A stretch of 64,000 nucleotides of DNA from positions 267,571 through 331,570 of the IMG/VR virus record IMGVR_UViG_3300017917_001123; one strand, written 5' to 3'. The position numbers were made by a program, and so were the translations under genes. Shown here piece after piece: positions 2,593 to 62,305 of this stretch; the first letter of the stretch is position 1, and each line of letters opens with the position of its first letter. The notes under the pieces are model-generated. The model was not told the origin of the DNA and did no database searches. It saw nothing but the letters and a program-made list of their open reading frames with translations.

Positions 2593-3551
2593 GAATTCCT
2601 CTTAATACGATTACAAAGTTTGGTCAGCAGACAATGTTAGATCGCCCTTTATTCAATGTAAGTTGGATACTAGGGCGATTCTGTAATTACAAGTGTTCTT
2701 ACTGCTGGCCTTATGCTAGATCAGACAAGTTAGACTTTTTGCCTATAGAAACTTATACTAAAGTTATAGACGAAATAAAGCGGCAAGCCAGGGCGAACGG
2801 CTTCACAGAGTTTCACTGGAGTTTTAGTGGAGGCGAACCTACAGCTTTTAAACAGTTGCCAGAAATCTTTAAACACATTGAACGCGATCTTGTAAGTCCT
2901 TATCAGAGTGTTCATATGACTACTAATCTAAGCCCGGGAAGCAATTGGTGGAGAAACTGGTGCTTAATTACAAGTCCTTTACAGCGTAGAAGTATTACTG
3001 CCAGTTACCACGAAGAGTTTGCTAAAGAGCAAGAGTTTGGTGATAAGTGTCTACAGCTAATGTATGAAAGTGTTTTTGTAACAGTTAACCAAGTAATGGT
3101 TCCTGAGCGTTTCTATGAGCTGTATGAACGTTGTGCTAGACTGCGTCAGCGTGGTATCAACGTAACTCTAAAGCCACAGACAAATCCTACAGCTACAGCC
3201 GTTGTTGACGGATACACTGAAGATATGATTGCTATAATGAAGAAAGATTTTCAACAGCAGGCAAACGGAGAACAGCTACATCAAATACGACTAACTGACG
3301 GAAACAATACCTATTTTATTGATCAAGCAGAACGGTTTAATGCTTTAGGATTCAACAAGTTTAAAGGATGGAATTGCGTTGCGGGTTATCAAAGTGTTGT
3401 AATTAGAGGACAAGAAGTTAAACGTAGTCATAGTTGTCACGAAGATTCTTTAGGCACGGTTGATAATTTTACTTTGTTTAAAGAATTAAAGCCCTGTATA
3501 ACTGAGTCTTGTATGAGCTCTGCGGACAGTAAGTTACCTAAGACTAAATAG
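2583..3551 (+). CDS. radical SAM protein
   Basis: CNYKCSYC (CxxxCxxC), FSGGEPT, TTNLS; ends TAG followed at once by TAA. Confidence 0.9.
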   Translation: MEIRIPLNTITKFGQQTMLDRPLFNVSWILGRFCNYKCSYCWPYARSDKLDFLPIETYTKVIDEIKRQARANGFTEFHWSFSGGEPTAFKQLPEIFKHIERDLVSPYQSVHMTTNLSPGSNWWRNWCLITSPLQRRSITASYHEEFAKEQEFGDKCLQLMYESVFVTVNQVMVPERFYELYERCARLRQRGINVTLKPQTNPTATAVVDGYTEDMIAIMKKDFQQQANGEQLHQIRLTDGNNTYFIDQAERFNALGFNKFKGWNCVAGYQSVVIRGQEVKRSHSCHEDSLGTVDNFTLFKELKPCITESCMSSADSKLPKTK

Positions 3552-3576
3552 TAAAAAGAAACGGTTATTCTGTCCT

Positions 3577-52363: not shown

Positions 52364-52392
52364 TTGACGGGCTCGTCAACTTGTTTTATAAT
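52364..52392 (+). promoter_or_regulatory. sigma70 promoter for the microprotein/tmRNA unit
   Basis: TTGACG-17 nt-TATAAT; -35 is within the inverted repeat TTGACG-GGCT-CGTCAA. Confidence 0.8.
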
Positions 52393-52417: not shown

Positions 52418-52489
52418 ATGGCATATAGAGCTAAAAATGGTAGCGTAAAGGCAGCGGCACGTAGAGCATTACGTCGTCGACAGAAATAA
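52418..52489 (+). CDS. 23-aa highly basic microprotein
   Basis: GAAAGGA SD; MAYRAKNGSVKAAARRALRRRQK; not in ORF track. Confidence 0.65.
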   Translation: MAYRAKNGSVKAAARRALRRRQK

Positions 52490-52569
52490 TTTTATTGCTG
52501 TATGAAGCAAACCCAAAAGGGTTCTGGACGCGGGTTCGACTCCCGCCAGGTCCACCAAAAGAGGATTGT

Positions 52570-52644
52570 ATGAACGAAGAAGTAACTAAATGGATGCTGG
52601 GCGTGGGCCTAGTTCTTTTAATGTTCTTTTTAGTCCTTTTTTGA
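52570..52644 (+). CDS. 24-aa membrane microprotein inside the tmRNA intervening sequence
   Basis: GAGGA SD at 52561-52565; MNEEVTKWMLGVGLVLLMFFLVLF-TGA. Confidence 0.55.
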   Translation: MNEEVTKWMLGVGLVLLMFFLVLF

Positions 52645-52734
52645 TGGGCCTGTACTGGATTTCGACAGGGTCAAGAGTAGGCGAGTGGACAGCACGGTAG
52701 GCGATGACCGTAAATCAAGCAAAACAAAATAGAC

Positions 52735-52767
52735 GCAAACGATGAAGTTTACGCATTGGCGGCCTAA
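52735..52767 (+). other. tmRNA tag reading frame (A)ANDEVYALAA
   Basis: AAAATAGAC-GCA resume context; C-terminal LAA degron; TAATAA stop. Confidence 0.92.
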
Positions 52768-52811
52768 TAACGGCTTCCTAGGGTAGGAAATACCTCGTAA
52801 CAGAAAATACC

Positions 52812-52838
52812 AAAAGGCTCTTCGGAGCCTTTTTCTTT
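52812..52838 (+). terminator. intrinsic terminator after tmRNA
   Basis: AAAAGGCTC-TTCG-GAGCCTTTT followed by a T tract. Confidence 0.9.
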
Positions 52839-52853
52839 GAGTCAAAAAATGTC

Positions 52854-52882
52854 TTGACTCTTCAGTGAAAACACTATATAAT
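52854..52882 (+). promoter_or_regulatory. sigma70 promoter for the outer-membrane protein gene
   Basis: TTGACT-17 nt-TATAAT. Confidence 0.75.
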
Positions 52883-52959: not shown

Positions 52960-53424
52960 ATGAGAAAATTCGCAATCGCATCAATCTTGGCTTTGGCCGC
53001 AGTTTCAGCTTCGGCTGTAGAACTTGGCGTTACCGCAACACGTGGTGACACCACAGGTGATACTCGCAACTACGCAGGTGTTACCCTTGGTCAAAGTTTT
53101 GGCAAGCTAAATGCAACTGCTGGCTTTGAGCGTTCAACTGTTGGCGCACAGGGCAATCAGAACCGCTGGAGCTTGGTTGGTGGATACGACATTGCCAAGG
53201 TTGGTCCAGTTACTTTTACTCCTAAACTTGGTTATGCTTACTTAGACAATCAGACTCCGGGTGTTGCCAGCGGCAATGCTTATACAGTTGGTCTAGGCGC
53301 ATCATACGCTCTCACTAAGCAAGTTAGCCTTACCGCAGACTATGCTTATCAAAAGGCCTTTGAAACAAAGGTTGAGCAGTTTGATGGCAACCGAGTTACA
53401 TTGGGTGCTAAGTACCGCTTCTAA
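52960..53424 (+). CDS. small outer-membrane beta-barrel protein (OmpA-TM/OmpX-like)
   Basis: Sec signal MRKFAIASILALAAVSASA, alternating beta pattern, C-terminal YRF. Confidence 0.88.
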   Translation: MRKFAIASILALAAVSASAVELGVTATRGDTTGDTRNYAGVTLGQSFGKLNATAGFERSTVGAQGNQNRWSLVGGYDIAKVGPVTFTPKLGYAYLDNQTPGVASGNAYTVGLGASYALTKQVSLTADYAYQKAFETKVEQFDGNRVTLGAKYRF

Positions 53425-53441
53425 TTTTTAAATTAGATATC

Positions 53442-53467
53442 AAAGGGGGCTTAGGCCCCCTTTTTAT
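53442..53467 (+). terminator. intrinsic terminator
   Basis: AAAGGGGGC-TTAG-GCCCCCTTT followed by TT. Confidence 0.88.
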
Positions 53468-53479
53468 TAGGAACAAGTT

Positions 53480-53725
53480 ATGGGCAATCAAACAGACTAC
53501 TTTAATAAAATTGGATACAAGCCTACCTACTTCATTGGGGATAGAGTTTTCGGCCACTGGAATAAAATTCCCTTTGTTGGAACTGTTGGCAACGATACAC
53601 TTATTAATCACGAAGAAGGACCTAGAATCAGCGTCCATGTAGATCTGCCAATTAAATACAAGGACACTATAAAGAGTGTTATAATTGTAAAACACAAAGA
53701 CATTAAACTATTAAAGGAGATTTAA
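53480..53725 (+). CDS. hypothetical protein (small SH3-like?)
   Basis: 81 aa; IGDRVFGHW..FVGTV. Confidence 0.7.
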   Translation: MGNQTDYFNKIGYKPTYFIGDRVFGHWNKIPFVGTVGNDTLINHEEGPRISVHVDLPIKYKDTIKSVIIVKHKDIKLLKEI

Positions 53726-53726
53726 A

Positions 53727-54302
53727 ATGTCGTAGATTGAATATGCGTGTAAAGATATTGTTTTCCACTTTAACAAAAAGCACTTGGAAGACCAGACCAT
53801 TCCCATGTGGGTCTTAAAATTTCATGGCGAAACCCTGTATGTAAATCACGTTGATTGTAGTGTTCCCTGGAGCACAAAAGAGACGCCCGATAACAGCCAT
53901 ACTAAAGGTAGCATCAAAGTTAAAGACGTATTGTTACGTGTTGACAACGAAAACTGTGCTACAATTTCCCAACTAACTCTAATTGACAAGTATAGACTTC
54001 GTAACCAGAAGCTAGGCATCACACGAATTATGTTTAGTCCTGGTACTGCTTTTCACAAGGCTTTACAGAATAACGAATTTAAACATAGTCCGTTTAAGAC
54101 TATTCGTGGCGCCTGTGCTAGTACGTTTATTATCTGTGATCTTTTAAACAAAGCAGATGTAACCATGGCAGGACTGAAGTACACAAGTCAGTTTAGAATT
54201 GTCAAACCAAACGAGGGCTACTTCCAACAGTACGACGAAATCAAAGGGGATAACATTCCTGTAGATTATGGACACCCAAGTACTCCTTACGAGTACAGCT
54301 AA
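53727..54302 (+). CDS. hypothetical protein with an in-frame TAG at codon 3 (read-through candidate or pseudogene)
   Basis: AAGGAGA SD, ATG TCG TAG ATT GAA TAT GCG TGT.. continuing in frame into the ORF-track 53784..54302; 191 aa if read through. Confidence 0.65.
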
Positions 54303-55181: not shown

Positions 55182-55538
55182 ATGGCTGAGATTTTTAAAT
55201 GCTTAAACTGCGGGAGAGAAAACCCTGTTAAAGGCGCAAATTATTCAAACAAGTATTGTAATAATCATTGCCAGCAACAGCATAGAAAGAAACTCCTAAA
55301 CGAAAAGCGTATTCAAGAATGGAAGTCAGGATGCGGGCTTTATGTATGGAAGGAAGTTCCGGATTACATTAAAGAACACCTTATCCAAGAGCGTGGGCAT
55401 CAATGTGAAGTATGCGGTATTACAGAGTGGCAGGGCAATCCGGCTCCGCTAACTGTAACGCAGAAAGACCGAGATGCTTATAACAACAAAGAAGATAACT
55501 TAGAAGTCATCTGTTATAATTGCTTATCGCAAAAATAA
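55182..55538 (+). CDS. HNH-fold zinc protein lacking catalytic histidines
   Basis: CLNC, YCNNHC, CEVCG, LTVTQKD..NNKEDNL..CYNCL. Confidence 0.7.
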   Translation: MAEIFKCLNCGRENPVKGANYSNKYCNNHCQQQHRKKLLNEKRIQEWKSGCGLYVWKEVPDYIKEHLIQERGHQCEVCGITEWQGNPAPLTVTQKDRDAYNNKEDNLEVICYNCLSQK

Positions 55539-55565: not shown

Positions 55566-56105
55566 ATGAAAACCGTTGGACAAAAATTAGATCCGTTTAT
55601 CGTAACTGGTGTTAAGCCAGGTCAACCTGAAGATGCTTTCTTCGACATCACCGAGGAATCATTCCCAGGTAAGTGGAAAGTAATCGTTTACTATCCAAAG
55701 GACTTTACATTCGTTTGCCCAACTGAAATTGTTGCCTACGATAAGTTGGCACAGGATTTCGCAGACCGCGACGCTGTATTGCTAACTGGTTCAACAGACA
55801 ACGAGTTCTGTAAGGTAGCTTGGCAGAAGGCACACCCAGATCTACAAAAGATCACTCACACTCAGTTCGCTGATACACAGCGTGGTGAGAACAGCCTAAT
55901 CGAGCAACTAGGTGTATTCTATGCTCCAGCAGGTGCGGCTCTTCGTGCTACATTCATTGTTGATCCTAACAACGAAATCCAGCACGTTACAGTCAACAAC
56001 TTGAACGTTGGTCGTAGCCCAGAGGAAACACTTCGTGTTCTTGATGCGCTACAAACTGGCGAGCTTTGCGCTTGTAACCGTGCTGTAGGCGGCGAAACAC
56101 TTTAA
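55566..56105 (+). CDS. ahpC: 2-Cys peroxiredoxin
   Basis: YPKDFTFVCPTE, LRATFIVDP, GRSPEE, GELCACN. Confidence 0.96.
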   Translation: MKTVGQKLDPFIVTGVKPGQPEDAFFDITEESFPGKWKVIVYYPKDFTFVCPTEIVAYDKLAQDFADRDAVLLTGSTDNEFCKVAWQKAHPDLQKITHTQFADTQRGENSLIEQLGVFYAPAGAALRATFIVDPNNEIQHVTVNNLNVGRSPEETLRVLDALQTGELCACNRAVGGETL

Positions 56106-62230: not shown

Positions 62231-62305
62231 GCGTCTGTAGCTAAGTGGCATAGCAGGAGCCTCTAAAACTCTGAATCGCGGGTTCGATTCCCGCCAGACG
62301 CACCA
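62231..62305 (+). tRNA. tRNA with CUA anticodon (amber-suppressor-like)
   Basis: acceptor GCGTCTG/CAGACGC+ACCA; D arm GCTA/TAGC; anticodon arm GGAGC-CTCTAAA-ACTCT (CTA at 62263-62265, C31-A39 mismatch); T arm GCGGG-TTCGATT-CCCGC. Confidence 0.85.

Follow-up and report, generated by a model that had tools for sequence, protein, structure and literature searches.

A conserved amber codon at the start of a jumbo phage gene and its linked CUA-anticodon tRNA as a putative translational gate

Phages that read in-frame stop codons with the help of their own suppressor tRNAs are well known. In stop-codon-recoded phages (genetic code 15), such as crAss-like, Lak and Agate/Jade phages, including the "code change module" described for Jade phages, a phage-encoded CUA (or UCA) suppressor tRNA allows these codons to be read in a host that uses the standard code, and it has been proposed to regulate when certain genes are translated (bioRxiv 10.1101/2021.08.26.457843; PMC9523058). 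In those phages tens of genes carry many recoded stops, mostly late and lysis genes, and the sites alternate with sense codons. In contrast, the locus described here lies in a jumbo phage that, within the sequence analyzed, otherwise uses the standard code; only one gene (in other lineages one or two) carries a single stop codon, which is always TAG, always 2-9 codons after the ATG, and physically linked to a CUA-anticodon tRNA. We found no description of this module in the literature searched, where phage suppressor tRNAs have so far been discussed as tools for wholesale recoding.

The window, i.e., the whole stretch of DNA analyzed, comprises 64 kb (IMG/VR record IMGVR_UViG_3300017917_001123, positions 267,571 to 331,570) of a 331.6-kb contig. 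Its features are listed in Table 1.

Table 1. Features of the amber-containing gene and its surroundings (window coordinates)
Feature	Position	Strand	Description
Shine-Dalgarno (SD) sequence	53714-53720	+	AAGGAGA, 6 nt upstream of the ATG
Leader	53727-53732	+	ATG (53727-53729) plus one sense codon, TCG (53730-53732)
Amber codon	53733-53735	+	Conserved in-frame TAG, followed by ATT (A at the +4 position)
Gene body	53736-54302	+	188 codons plus TAA (54300-54302); predicted N-terminal beta-rich domain (about residues 1-80), ACT/RRM-like domain (about 94-171) and acidic tail ending PYEYS; function unknown
CUA-anticodon tRNA	62231-62305	+	Amber suppressor type; acceptor stem G1-C72, C2-G71, G3-C70; discriminator base A73; CCA encoded; anticodon loop CUCUAAA with a C31/A39 mismatch; found by ARAGORN and by the Rfam tRNA model (65.1 bits)
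tmRNA	52447-52858	+	Two-piece, betaproteobacterial type, tag ANDEVYALAA; ARAGORN, Rfam RF01850 at 152.6 bits and RF04321 at 132.8 bits; associated neighbour, not shown to be part of the gate
Upstream ORF	53480-53725	+	81 aa; its stop codon TAA (53723-53725) lies between the SD and the ATG, so that the SD lies inside its 3' end; context only

Conservation of the amber codon and its linkage to a CUA tRNA

The initial annotation had proposed, from the sequence alone, that the strong SD and the amber codon at position 3 mark a gene expressed only with the phage's own CUA tRNA, located 8.5 kb away, with a nonsense mutation or assembly error as the competing explanation. Inspection of the window confirmed the arrangement. 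The complete reading frame comprises 191 codons including the TAG and reads MS-(amber)-IEYACKDIVFHFNKKHLEDQTIPMW..., whereas the first canonical start after the TAG is a TTG at 53784, which has no SD. A Logan contig of the probable source run, representing an independent assembly, matches 53400-53818 with no differences. No variant at the TAG was listed in any of four runs, although dozens of related contigs with many other differences were mapped to the region; this comparison rests on contigs rather than raw reads. A search for near-identical DNA in deposited phages gave no match.

To assess whether the TAG is maintained, homologous loci were collected and compared. In the first scan it was present in all 72 loci, and in the pooled set it occupies exactly this site in 99 of 104 distinct full-length loci (56-100% protein identity). 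The other five have an ATG directly at that position and no leader, and no locus keeps the leader with a sense codon in place of TAG. The TAG also recurs in the N-domain-only homologs of locus L086 and of the complete cultured relative, Rhizobium phage RHph_I1_18. In 100 distinct loci the leader is ATG plus one codon (70 loci), two codons (15), three codons (12) or eight codons (2), with freely varying residues, and it appears to exist only to carry the TAG. An SD-like element at matching spacing before the leader ATG is present in the related loci. For homologs without TAG, scans with the proteins P0142 and P0129 found nothing in viral contigs, and other contigs were short.

Codons +1 to +23 after the TAG are conserved as protein with free third-position change, e.g., Val +9 is encoded by GTG, GTC, GTT or GTA, and they form a confident first beta-strand in the AlphaFold2 model (pLDDT 86.7). 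The codon following TAG is ATT in 86, ATC in 7, GTA in 4, ATA in 2 and ACT in 1 of the loci, and AAC in RHph_I1_18; the base after TAG is A in 96 and G in 4 of 100 loci. These codons cannot serve as a general restart codon, and the distance from the SD varies with leader length. The gene's own stop codon is never TAG (TAA 49, TGA 24). Notably, the initial annotation's suggestion to look at the residue that homologs carry at position 3 is misleading, since the Q that public databases show there is itself TAG, read by gene callers using an alternative code.

The pattern also exceeds chance. SD-ATG-(1 to 12 codons)-TAG-(120 or more open codons) occurs 72 times in the first 72 related loci, every case being this gene, while the same pattern with TGA occurs once and with TAA never. 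An unbiased census of ATG-(1 to 5 codons)-stop-(70 or more open codons) gave TAG clusters of 100 (this gene), 6 (PTH2-like genes, see below) and 4, the last with a Met at +3 that we take to be an ordinary start. The TGA and TAA controls gave only ordinary starts with a nearby Met.

Next, the linkage of the gene to tRNAs was examined. ARAGORN finds a CUA tRNA in 90 of 105 distinct loci, and it is the nearest tRNA in 86 of the 91 loci that hold any tRNA. Five apparent absences have an atypical CUA tRNA just upstream that Infernal finds, bringing the total to 95 of 105 loci, always on the gene's strand and including every locus with 10 kb on both sides. In the first 74 loci analyzed for distance, the tRNA lies 21 nt to 8.4 kb away, upstream in 64 and downstream in 5, with none found in 5. 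No protein-coding neighbour is nearly as constant; the upstream 81-aa ORF was found next to the gene in only 22 of 169 loci, and a tmRNA lies within 10 kb in 27 of 105 distinct loci. The tRNA family is under selection: it has 93 distinct sequences with compensatory stem changes, the acceptor stem reads GCG/CGC in 71 of the 93, and A73-CCA is encoded in 82. Comparison with the other 356 phage tRNAs gave no consistent closest type (Phe, Arg, Leu and Thr all appear), and since the acceptor stem is not like that of the phage Gln tRNAs, insertion of Gln is not implied. No conserved RNA structure surrounds the TAG, only a weak hairpin about 55 nt downstream, which makes a trans-acting decoder the simplest agent.

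Genetic code, protein domains and PTH2-like genes

To determine if the TAG reflects genome-wide recoding, ORF coverage was compared under different codes. In the window, coverage is 94.7% under the standard code and 95.2% with TAG read as sense, and TAG ends 3 of 68 long ORFs. Sixteen related loci showed no gain beyond that of the TGA-sense control. In the complete RHph_I1_18 genome, coverage is 93.6% against 94.5% (TGA-sense control 95.3%), 30 of 264 ORFs end in TAG, and of the two TAG pattern matches only this gene is conserved. A homology-anchored scan for internal TAGs in all frames of all loci was far too noisy, because conserved non-coding frames align. As only 64 kb of the 331.6-kb genome could be read, other TAG-containing genes elsewhere cannot be excluded.

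The protein has 1511 homologs, none with a Pfam or PHROG family. Searches of PDB sequences, the ESM Atlas and five fold libraries also gave no significant named match; the C-terminal domain resembles ACT/RRM folds only weakly (Z no higher than 5.6). Neither the protein nor its alignment matches PTH2 (PF01981) or any other Pfam profile. Interestingly, in other huge phages the same gate sits on a PTH2-like peptidyl-tRNA hydrolase gene, with TAG at codon 3-5 followed by Ile or Val. These genes have a CUA tRNA close by (54-70 nt upstream in loci L176-L178) and a homolog of the N-terminal domain of the window protein directly downstream; in one protein, P0174, the two are fused. A search of species-representative bacterial genomes gave a single hit on a 7.6-kb MAG contig, which carries no host information. 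Judged from the tmRNA type, the jumbo phages probably infect Betaproteobacteria, whereas RHph_I1_18 is a T4-like phage of an alphaproteobacterium. In the record of the latter the gene is missing, and in protein databases it is either truncated or carries an assumed Gln.

Interpretation and alternative explanations

Together, these comparisons strongly support, with a probability of about 0.8 and without any direct measurement of the protein product, programmed amber read-through by a dedicated phage suppressor tRNA. In this reading, translation starts at the SD-ATG and ribosomes reach UAG at codon 3, where the phage CUA tRNA competes with the host release factor RF1. If the tRNA wins, the full 191-residue protein is made; if RF1 wins, only a dipeptide is released, so that the amount of protein follows the level of amber suppression in the infected cell. 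That this tRNA is charged and does the decoding is inferred; the assembled contigs give no direct evidence of its expression or charging or of a read-through product, and RNA runs contained at most 4% of the sampled words. Two observations sit less easily with this reading. Three of the five homologs without TAG (loci L094, L099 and L116) still have an adjacent CUA tRNA, which indicates that the tRNA does not exist only for this codon; in L099 the gate sits on the PTH2-like gene just upstream. Moreover, these phages still use TAG as a real stop codon, and an efficient suppressor would extend those proteins.

The core idea of the initial annotation is thus supported, but two of its details need correction. 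It had considered an incipient TAG reassignment, whereas this is an old, stable arrangement limited to one or two genes in genomes that, as far as they could be read, otherwise use the standard code. A pure timing switch is doubtful, since in many relatives the tRNA lies 21-150 nt upstream of the gene, on the same strand and probably in one transcript.

The purpose of the gate is inferred only, from gene neighbourhood and one domain fusion. Considering the gate on PTH2-like genes, their adjacency to or fusion with N-terminal domain homologs, and the frequent phage tmRNA neighbours, we propose that the gate couples production of translation quality-control proteins to how much stop-codon read-through is going on, i.e., a feed-forward or feedback sensor rather than a simple clock. 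Suppressor tRNAs drive read-through that the tmRNA system has to handle (Ueda et al. 2002, as cited in PMC3985003). A further, unlikely but not excluded possibility is that the tRNA and the gated genes form a self-regulating unit, in which the gated proteins act on the suppressor tRNA, or on the damage that read-through causes (stalled ribosomes, dropped-off peptidyl-tRNA), and their own UAG lets the phage measure suppression strength and hold it at a set point. This would also explain why standard-code phages can afford to carry an amber suppressor at all.

Among the alternatives, all of them unlikely, a separate mini-ORF survives best. An SD, an ATG, one to a few codons and a stop is exactly the anatomy of a minigene of the lambda bar or leader type, and ATT, the commonest next codon, may serve as a rare bacterial start, as in infC; the main ORF would then be started afresh at or near this codon, and the tRNA would be linked for another reason. 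However, most of the other codons found at this position cannot initiate, the spacing from the SD to any restart codon is not kept, as leader length varies from 2 to 9 codons, and the stop is always TAG, which a plain mini-ORF would not require. The near-universal same-strand CUA tRNA would also be left unexplained.

Genome-wide reassignment of TAG to Gln (code 15) is about as improbable. The CUA tRNA, the rarity of TAG stops in the window and the Q assigned by alternative-code gene callers would fit it, but reading TAG as sense gains no coding coverage specific to TAG in the 64 kb read here, in 16 related loci or in the complete RHph_I1_18 genome, the TAG never alternates with CAG or any other sense codon at this site, and the acceptor stem differs from that of the phage Gln tRNAs. 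Equally doubtful is read-through by host machinery (a near-cognate tRNA or weak RF1 termination), with the phage tRNA serving other targets. The invariant 3' purine, mostly A, may favour read-through in E. coli, and homologs without TAG keep the tRNA. Still, spontaneous read-through of UAG in bacteria is usually very low, no stimulatory RNA structure is conserved, and the tight physical linkage with a cognate tRNA argues for that tRNA as the decoder.

A sequencing or assembly error or a recent nonsense mutation, with a pseudogene or a start at TTG 53784 or ATG 53805, would fit the ORF listing, which begins at the TTG, and database entries of 180, 181 and 165 aa, but it is refuted by the conserved TAG in loci from many samples, by the independent assembly, and by the 19 residues between the TAG and 53784, which are strongly conserved as protein and part of the folded domain of the model. 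Initiation at UAG by an initiator-like CUA tRNA was rejected, since the tRNA has a paired G1-C72 and lacks the run of three G-C pairs in the anticodon stem, both apparently elongator features, and an ATG at proper SD spacing is always present.

Comparison with described systems

The pyrrolysine system likewise reads UAG as sense with a CUA tRNA, and both ARAGORN and the GenBank record of RHph_I1_18 label the tRNA "tRNA-Pyl". This label follows from the anticodon alone. The tRNA has an ordinary cloverleaf with GG in the D-loop, a variable loop of 5-6 nt, a TTCGA T-loop and an anticodon stem of 5 pairs or fewer, in contrast to the very short D-loop without G18-G19, 3-nt variable loop and long anticodon stem that appear to typify tRNA-Pyl, and no pyl genes were seen among the few window ORFs scanned. 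Lambda bar minigenes share the strong SD, the ATG, the few codons and the stop, as well as a link to peptidyl-tRNA hydrolase biology. However, they appear to have no conserved in-frame ORF after the stop and to use other stop codons, while here the stop abuts a conserved coding sequence.

In the autoregulation of release factor 2 (prfB), an early in-frame UGA makes the output depend on the balance between termination and an alternative decoding event, and the gated product is itself a translation factor (PMC5009743). prfB escapes the stop by a +1 frameshift and senses its own product, whereas here the escape would be by a cognate suppressor tRNA; the self-regulating unit considered above would be a natural analogue of prfB autoregulation, built around a suppressor tRNA that typically has a shortened anticodon stem. 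The two-part logic, in which output needs both the mRNA and the suppressor tRNA, also recalls synthetic amber-codon AND gates, e.g., supD paired with an amber-containing T7 RNA polymerase. Those are engineered, and the module described here would be a natural, evolutionarily conserved counterpart.

Conservation of the amber codon and of the downstream frame

Inspection of the window, which is the last 64 kb of the 331,570-bp viral contig IMGVR_UViG_3300017917_001123, confirmed the sequence described in the initial annotation, i.e., an AAGGAGA motif followed by ATG-TCG-TAG and a frame that stays open as far as a TAA codon. The first canonical start after the TAG is a TTG without an SD. ARAGORN and Rfam both placed a tRNA with anticodon CUA on the same strand. 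An independent Logan assembly of the probable source run matched positions 53400-53818 exactly, and no variant at the TAG was listed in any of four runs, although many diverged relatives were placed on the region, with alignments breaking immediately upstream of the TAG.

Coordinates of the features in the window and in related loci (L numbers are our designations for the regions fetched around the gene and its homologs)
Sequence	Position	Strand	Feature
Window	3549-3554		TAG end of an ORF followed immediately by TAA (tandem stop)
Window	52364-52392		Near-consensus promoter-like site (TTGACG, 17 nt, TATAAT)
Window	52447-52858	+	Two-piece (permuted) tmRNA of the betaproteobacterial type, tag ANDEVYALAA
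Window	52854-52882		Promoter-like site (TTGACT, 17 nt, TATAAT)
Window	52960-53424	+	154-aa outer-membrane beta-barrel or porin-like gene
Window	about 53443-53468		GC-rich hairpin with a T-run
Window	53714-53720		AAGGAGA (SD)
Window	53727		ATG
Window	53730		TCG
Window	53733-53735		TAG
Window	53784		TTG, first canonical start after the TAG
Window	54300-54302		TAA ending the open frame
Window	55182-55538	+	HNH endonuclease ORF (PHROG hit)
Window	55566-56105	+	Peroxiredoxin-like ORF
Window	62231-62305	same as the gene	tRNA with anticodon CUA
MN988519.1 (RHph_I1_18)	11233-11005 (locus L168 3978-4225)	minus (record)	Unannotated N-domain gene with TAG
L099	9625-9999		PTH2-like gene with TAG
L011	4165-4236		Atypical CUA tRNA
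L052	9879-9950		Atypical CUA tRNA
L065	9749-9818		Atypical CUA tRNA
L118	9851-9922		Atypical CUA tRNA
L137	5311-5379		Atypical CUA tRNA

The 188-aa piece encoded after the TAG has 1511 close homologs and no Pfam or PHROG family. Public protein databases store this protein in three forms: 191-aa entries beginning MSQIEY, MAQIEY or MKQIEY; 180- or 181-aa entries beginning at an internal GTG or TTG; and 165-aa entries beginning at the Met of IPMW. The DNA behind three of the 191-aa entries reads ATG-AAA-TAG-ATT or ATG-TCA-TAG-ATT and does not translate to the stored protein under the standard code. The Q is therefore a TAG read by a gene caller using an alternative code, and all three forms are artefacts of gene calling.

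To assess the conservation of the TAG, the surroundings of the gene were retrieved from viral contigs. All 72 loci of the first scan have TAG directly before the conserved IEYACKD, and with later scans the pooled count reached 99 of 104 distinct full-length loci, at 56-100% identity to the window protein. The five exceptions have no leader at all, an ATG being located where the TAG would be, and no locus keeps the leader with a sense codon in place of TAG. The leader itself consists of ATG plus 1, 2, 3 or 8 codons of variable sequence. The pattern SD-ATG-(1 to 12 codons)-stop-(120 or more open codons) occurs 72 times with TAG in the first 72 loci, every case being this gene, whereas it occurs once with TGA and never with TAA.

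Comparison of the loci indicates that the sequence after the TAG is translated, and not from a restart. Codons +1 to +23 are conserved as amino acids while third positions vary freely, and they form the first strand of a confidently predicted domain (pLDDT 92 for residues 1-20). The codon after TAG is ATT in 86 loci, ATC in 7, GTA in 4, ATA in 2 and ACT in 1, and it is AAC in the Rhizobium phage RHph_I1_18; most of these cannot initiate translation, and the distance from the SD changes with leader length. The base after TAG is always a purine, A in 96 of 100 loci. No conserved RNA structure was found around the site. The gene's own terminator is TAA (49 loci) or TGA (24), never TAG.

The linked CUA tRNA and the genetic code

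ARAGORN identified a CUA tRNA in 90 of 105 distinct loci, always on the strand of the gene. Where a locus holds any tRNA, the CUA tRNA is the nearest one to the gene in 86 of 91 cases, even when arrays of 10-35 other tRNAs lie nearby. In the first 74 loci analyzed for distance, the tRNA lies 21 nt to 8.4 kb away, upstream in 64 and downstream in 5, with none found in 5; in the window it is 7.9 kb downstream. Five loci that seemed to lack it have an atypical CUA tRNA just upstream, which ARAGORN misses (in several cases because of an unusual D-arm) and the Infernal tRNA model detects at 34-47 bits; tRNA surveys will therefore undercount this family. The remaining absences are loci with short flanks. 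No protein-coding neighbor is comparably constant, the next most frequent being an ORF that looks like a peroxiredoxin (AhpC/TSA-like active-site motif FVCPTEI, seen by eye only), found in 48 of 169 loci. Notably, homologs of the gene that lack the TAG still have an adjacent CUA tRNA, about 130 nt upstream in L094 and L116, where its acceptor stem differs from the usual type, and 1.9 kb upstream in L099. The link between tRNA and protein is therefore not explained by the gate alone.

The tRNA family comprises 93 distinct sequences with many compensatory stem changes. The acceptor stem G1-C72, C2-G71, G3-C70 with A73 is present in most of them (GCG/CGC in 71 of 93), A73-CCA is encoded in 82, and the anticodon loop reads CUCUAAA or UUCUAAA. 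Only 18 of 93 have five standard pairs in the anticodon stem, against 353 of 430 other phage tRNAs from the same loci; the 31-39 pair is a mismatch in 63 of 93, mostly C/A, as in the tRNA of the window. Weakened anticodon stems have been tied to stop-codon reading (PMC13092985). The acceptor stem differs from that of the phage Gln tRNAs, and no other tRNA type is consistently closest, so the inserted amino acid is unknown.

Within the 64-kb window, the data do not indicate a recoded genome. Its 68 long ORFs end in TAA (51), TGA (14) or TAG (3), and ORF coverage is 94.7% under the standard code and 95.2% with TAG read as sense. Of the three TAG-terminated ORFs, one carries a tandem stop, and the other two would be extended by 16 and 31 codons if the TAG were read through. 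Related loci likewise show no gain specific to TAG. A cultured relative of the module exists in the T4-like Rhizobium phage RHph_I1_18 (MN988519.1), which has an unannotated gene reading MSEFM-TAG-NESCREVIFHFNK..., a homolog of the N-terminal domain only, with 76 residues after the TAG. The gene was probably missed because of the TAG. A tRNA(cta) of the same acceptor type, annotated as 'tRNA-Pyl', follows 11 nt after its stop codon. Across this complete 170,978-bp genome, coverage is 93.6% under the standard code and 94.5% with TAG as sense, while the TGA-sense control gives 95.3%, and thirty ORFs end in TAG. The pattern scan gave two TAG matches, about what the TGA (5) and TAA (1) controls give by chance; only the N-domain gene is a conserved homolog, and we judged the other match spurious.

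Amber codons in PTH2-like genes and predicted protein structure

The N-terminal domain (about residues 1-80) also occurs alone, as proteins of about 75-90 aa, and at the C-terminus of proteins of about 180 aa. One such protein (P0174) is a fusion with a PTH2 peptidyl-tRNA hydrolase domain (PF01981, E 1.6e-7), and in Sinorhizobium phage Phosso a PTH2 gene lies two genes upstream of the domain. In several huge low-GC phages, a PTH2-like ORF lies directly upstream of the N-domain gene. Interestingly, these PTH2-like genes carry the same device, with TAG at codon 3-5 followed by Ile or Val: MK-TAG-I in L099 and L176, MN-TAG-I in L088 and L177, MKN-TAG-I in L079, MTH-TAG-V in L078 and L178, MKDT-TAG-I in L087, MKR-TAG-I in L086 and MKQH-TAG-I in L179. 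A CUA tRNA lies 54-70 nt upstream in L176-L178 and nearby in most of the others, whereas none was found in L079 or in the short upstream flank of L179. In L099, the window-type gene has no TAG of its own and follows the gated PTH2-like gene directly.

To extend this analysis, an unbiased census of ATG-(1 to 5 codons)-stop-(70 or more open codons) was performed over all loci, with clustering by N-terminally anchored similarity. With TAG, it gave clusters of 100 (this gene) and 6 (PTH2-like), plus one of 4 with a Met at +3 that we take to be an ordinary start. With TGA or TAA, it gave only ordinary starts.

AlphaFold2 predicts a beta-rich N-terminal domain, an alpha/beta C-terminal domain and a disordered acidic tail ending in aromatic residues (pLDDT 86.7). 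The N-terminal domain resembles only small uncharacterized proteins, and the C-terminal domain resembles ACT/RRM-type folds at scores rated as common (Z no higher than 5.6). While the function remains unknown, the associations with PTH2, tmRNA (within 10 kb in 27 of 105 loci) and tRNA clusters point to translation quality control. The tmRNA of the window itself suggests a betaproteobacterial host. The porin-like gene that follows it (Pfam Porin_4 and OMP_b-brl), the N-terminus of which looks like a signal peptide, has a promoter-like site before it and a hairpin after it and looks like a moron-type insertion.

Proposed mechanism and relation to recoded phages

Together, the best-supported mechanism is programmed decoding of UAG by the linked phage tRNA in competition with RF1, where failure costs only a di- to nonapeptide; the comparative steps are shown, although decoding, charging and the protein product are inferred. 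The initial annotation had suggested a timing switch or an incipient TAG reassignment, but a pure timer is less attractive, because the tRNA and the gene are often adjacent on one strand. We favor a sensor that scales these proteins with the level of suppression, possibly closing a feedback loop. Suppressor tRNAs are known to create read-through that the tmRNA system must clear (Ueda et al. 2002, as cited in PMC3985003).

In the literature searched, which cannot prove novelty, we found no description of a standard-code phage with a dedicated suppressor tRNA and a single conserved N-terminal amber gate, of the gated PTH2-like genes, or of the weakened anticodon stems of these tRNAs. What has been described are recoded phages, their suppressor tRNAs and a "code change module" (bioRxiv 10.1101/2021.08.26.457843), as well as recoding and suppressor tRNAs in jumbo phages (PMC13037316).
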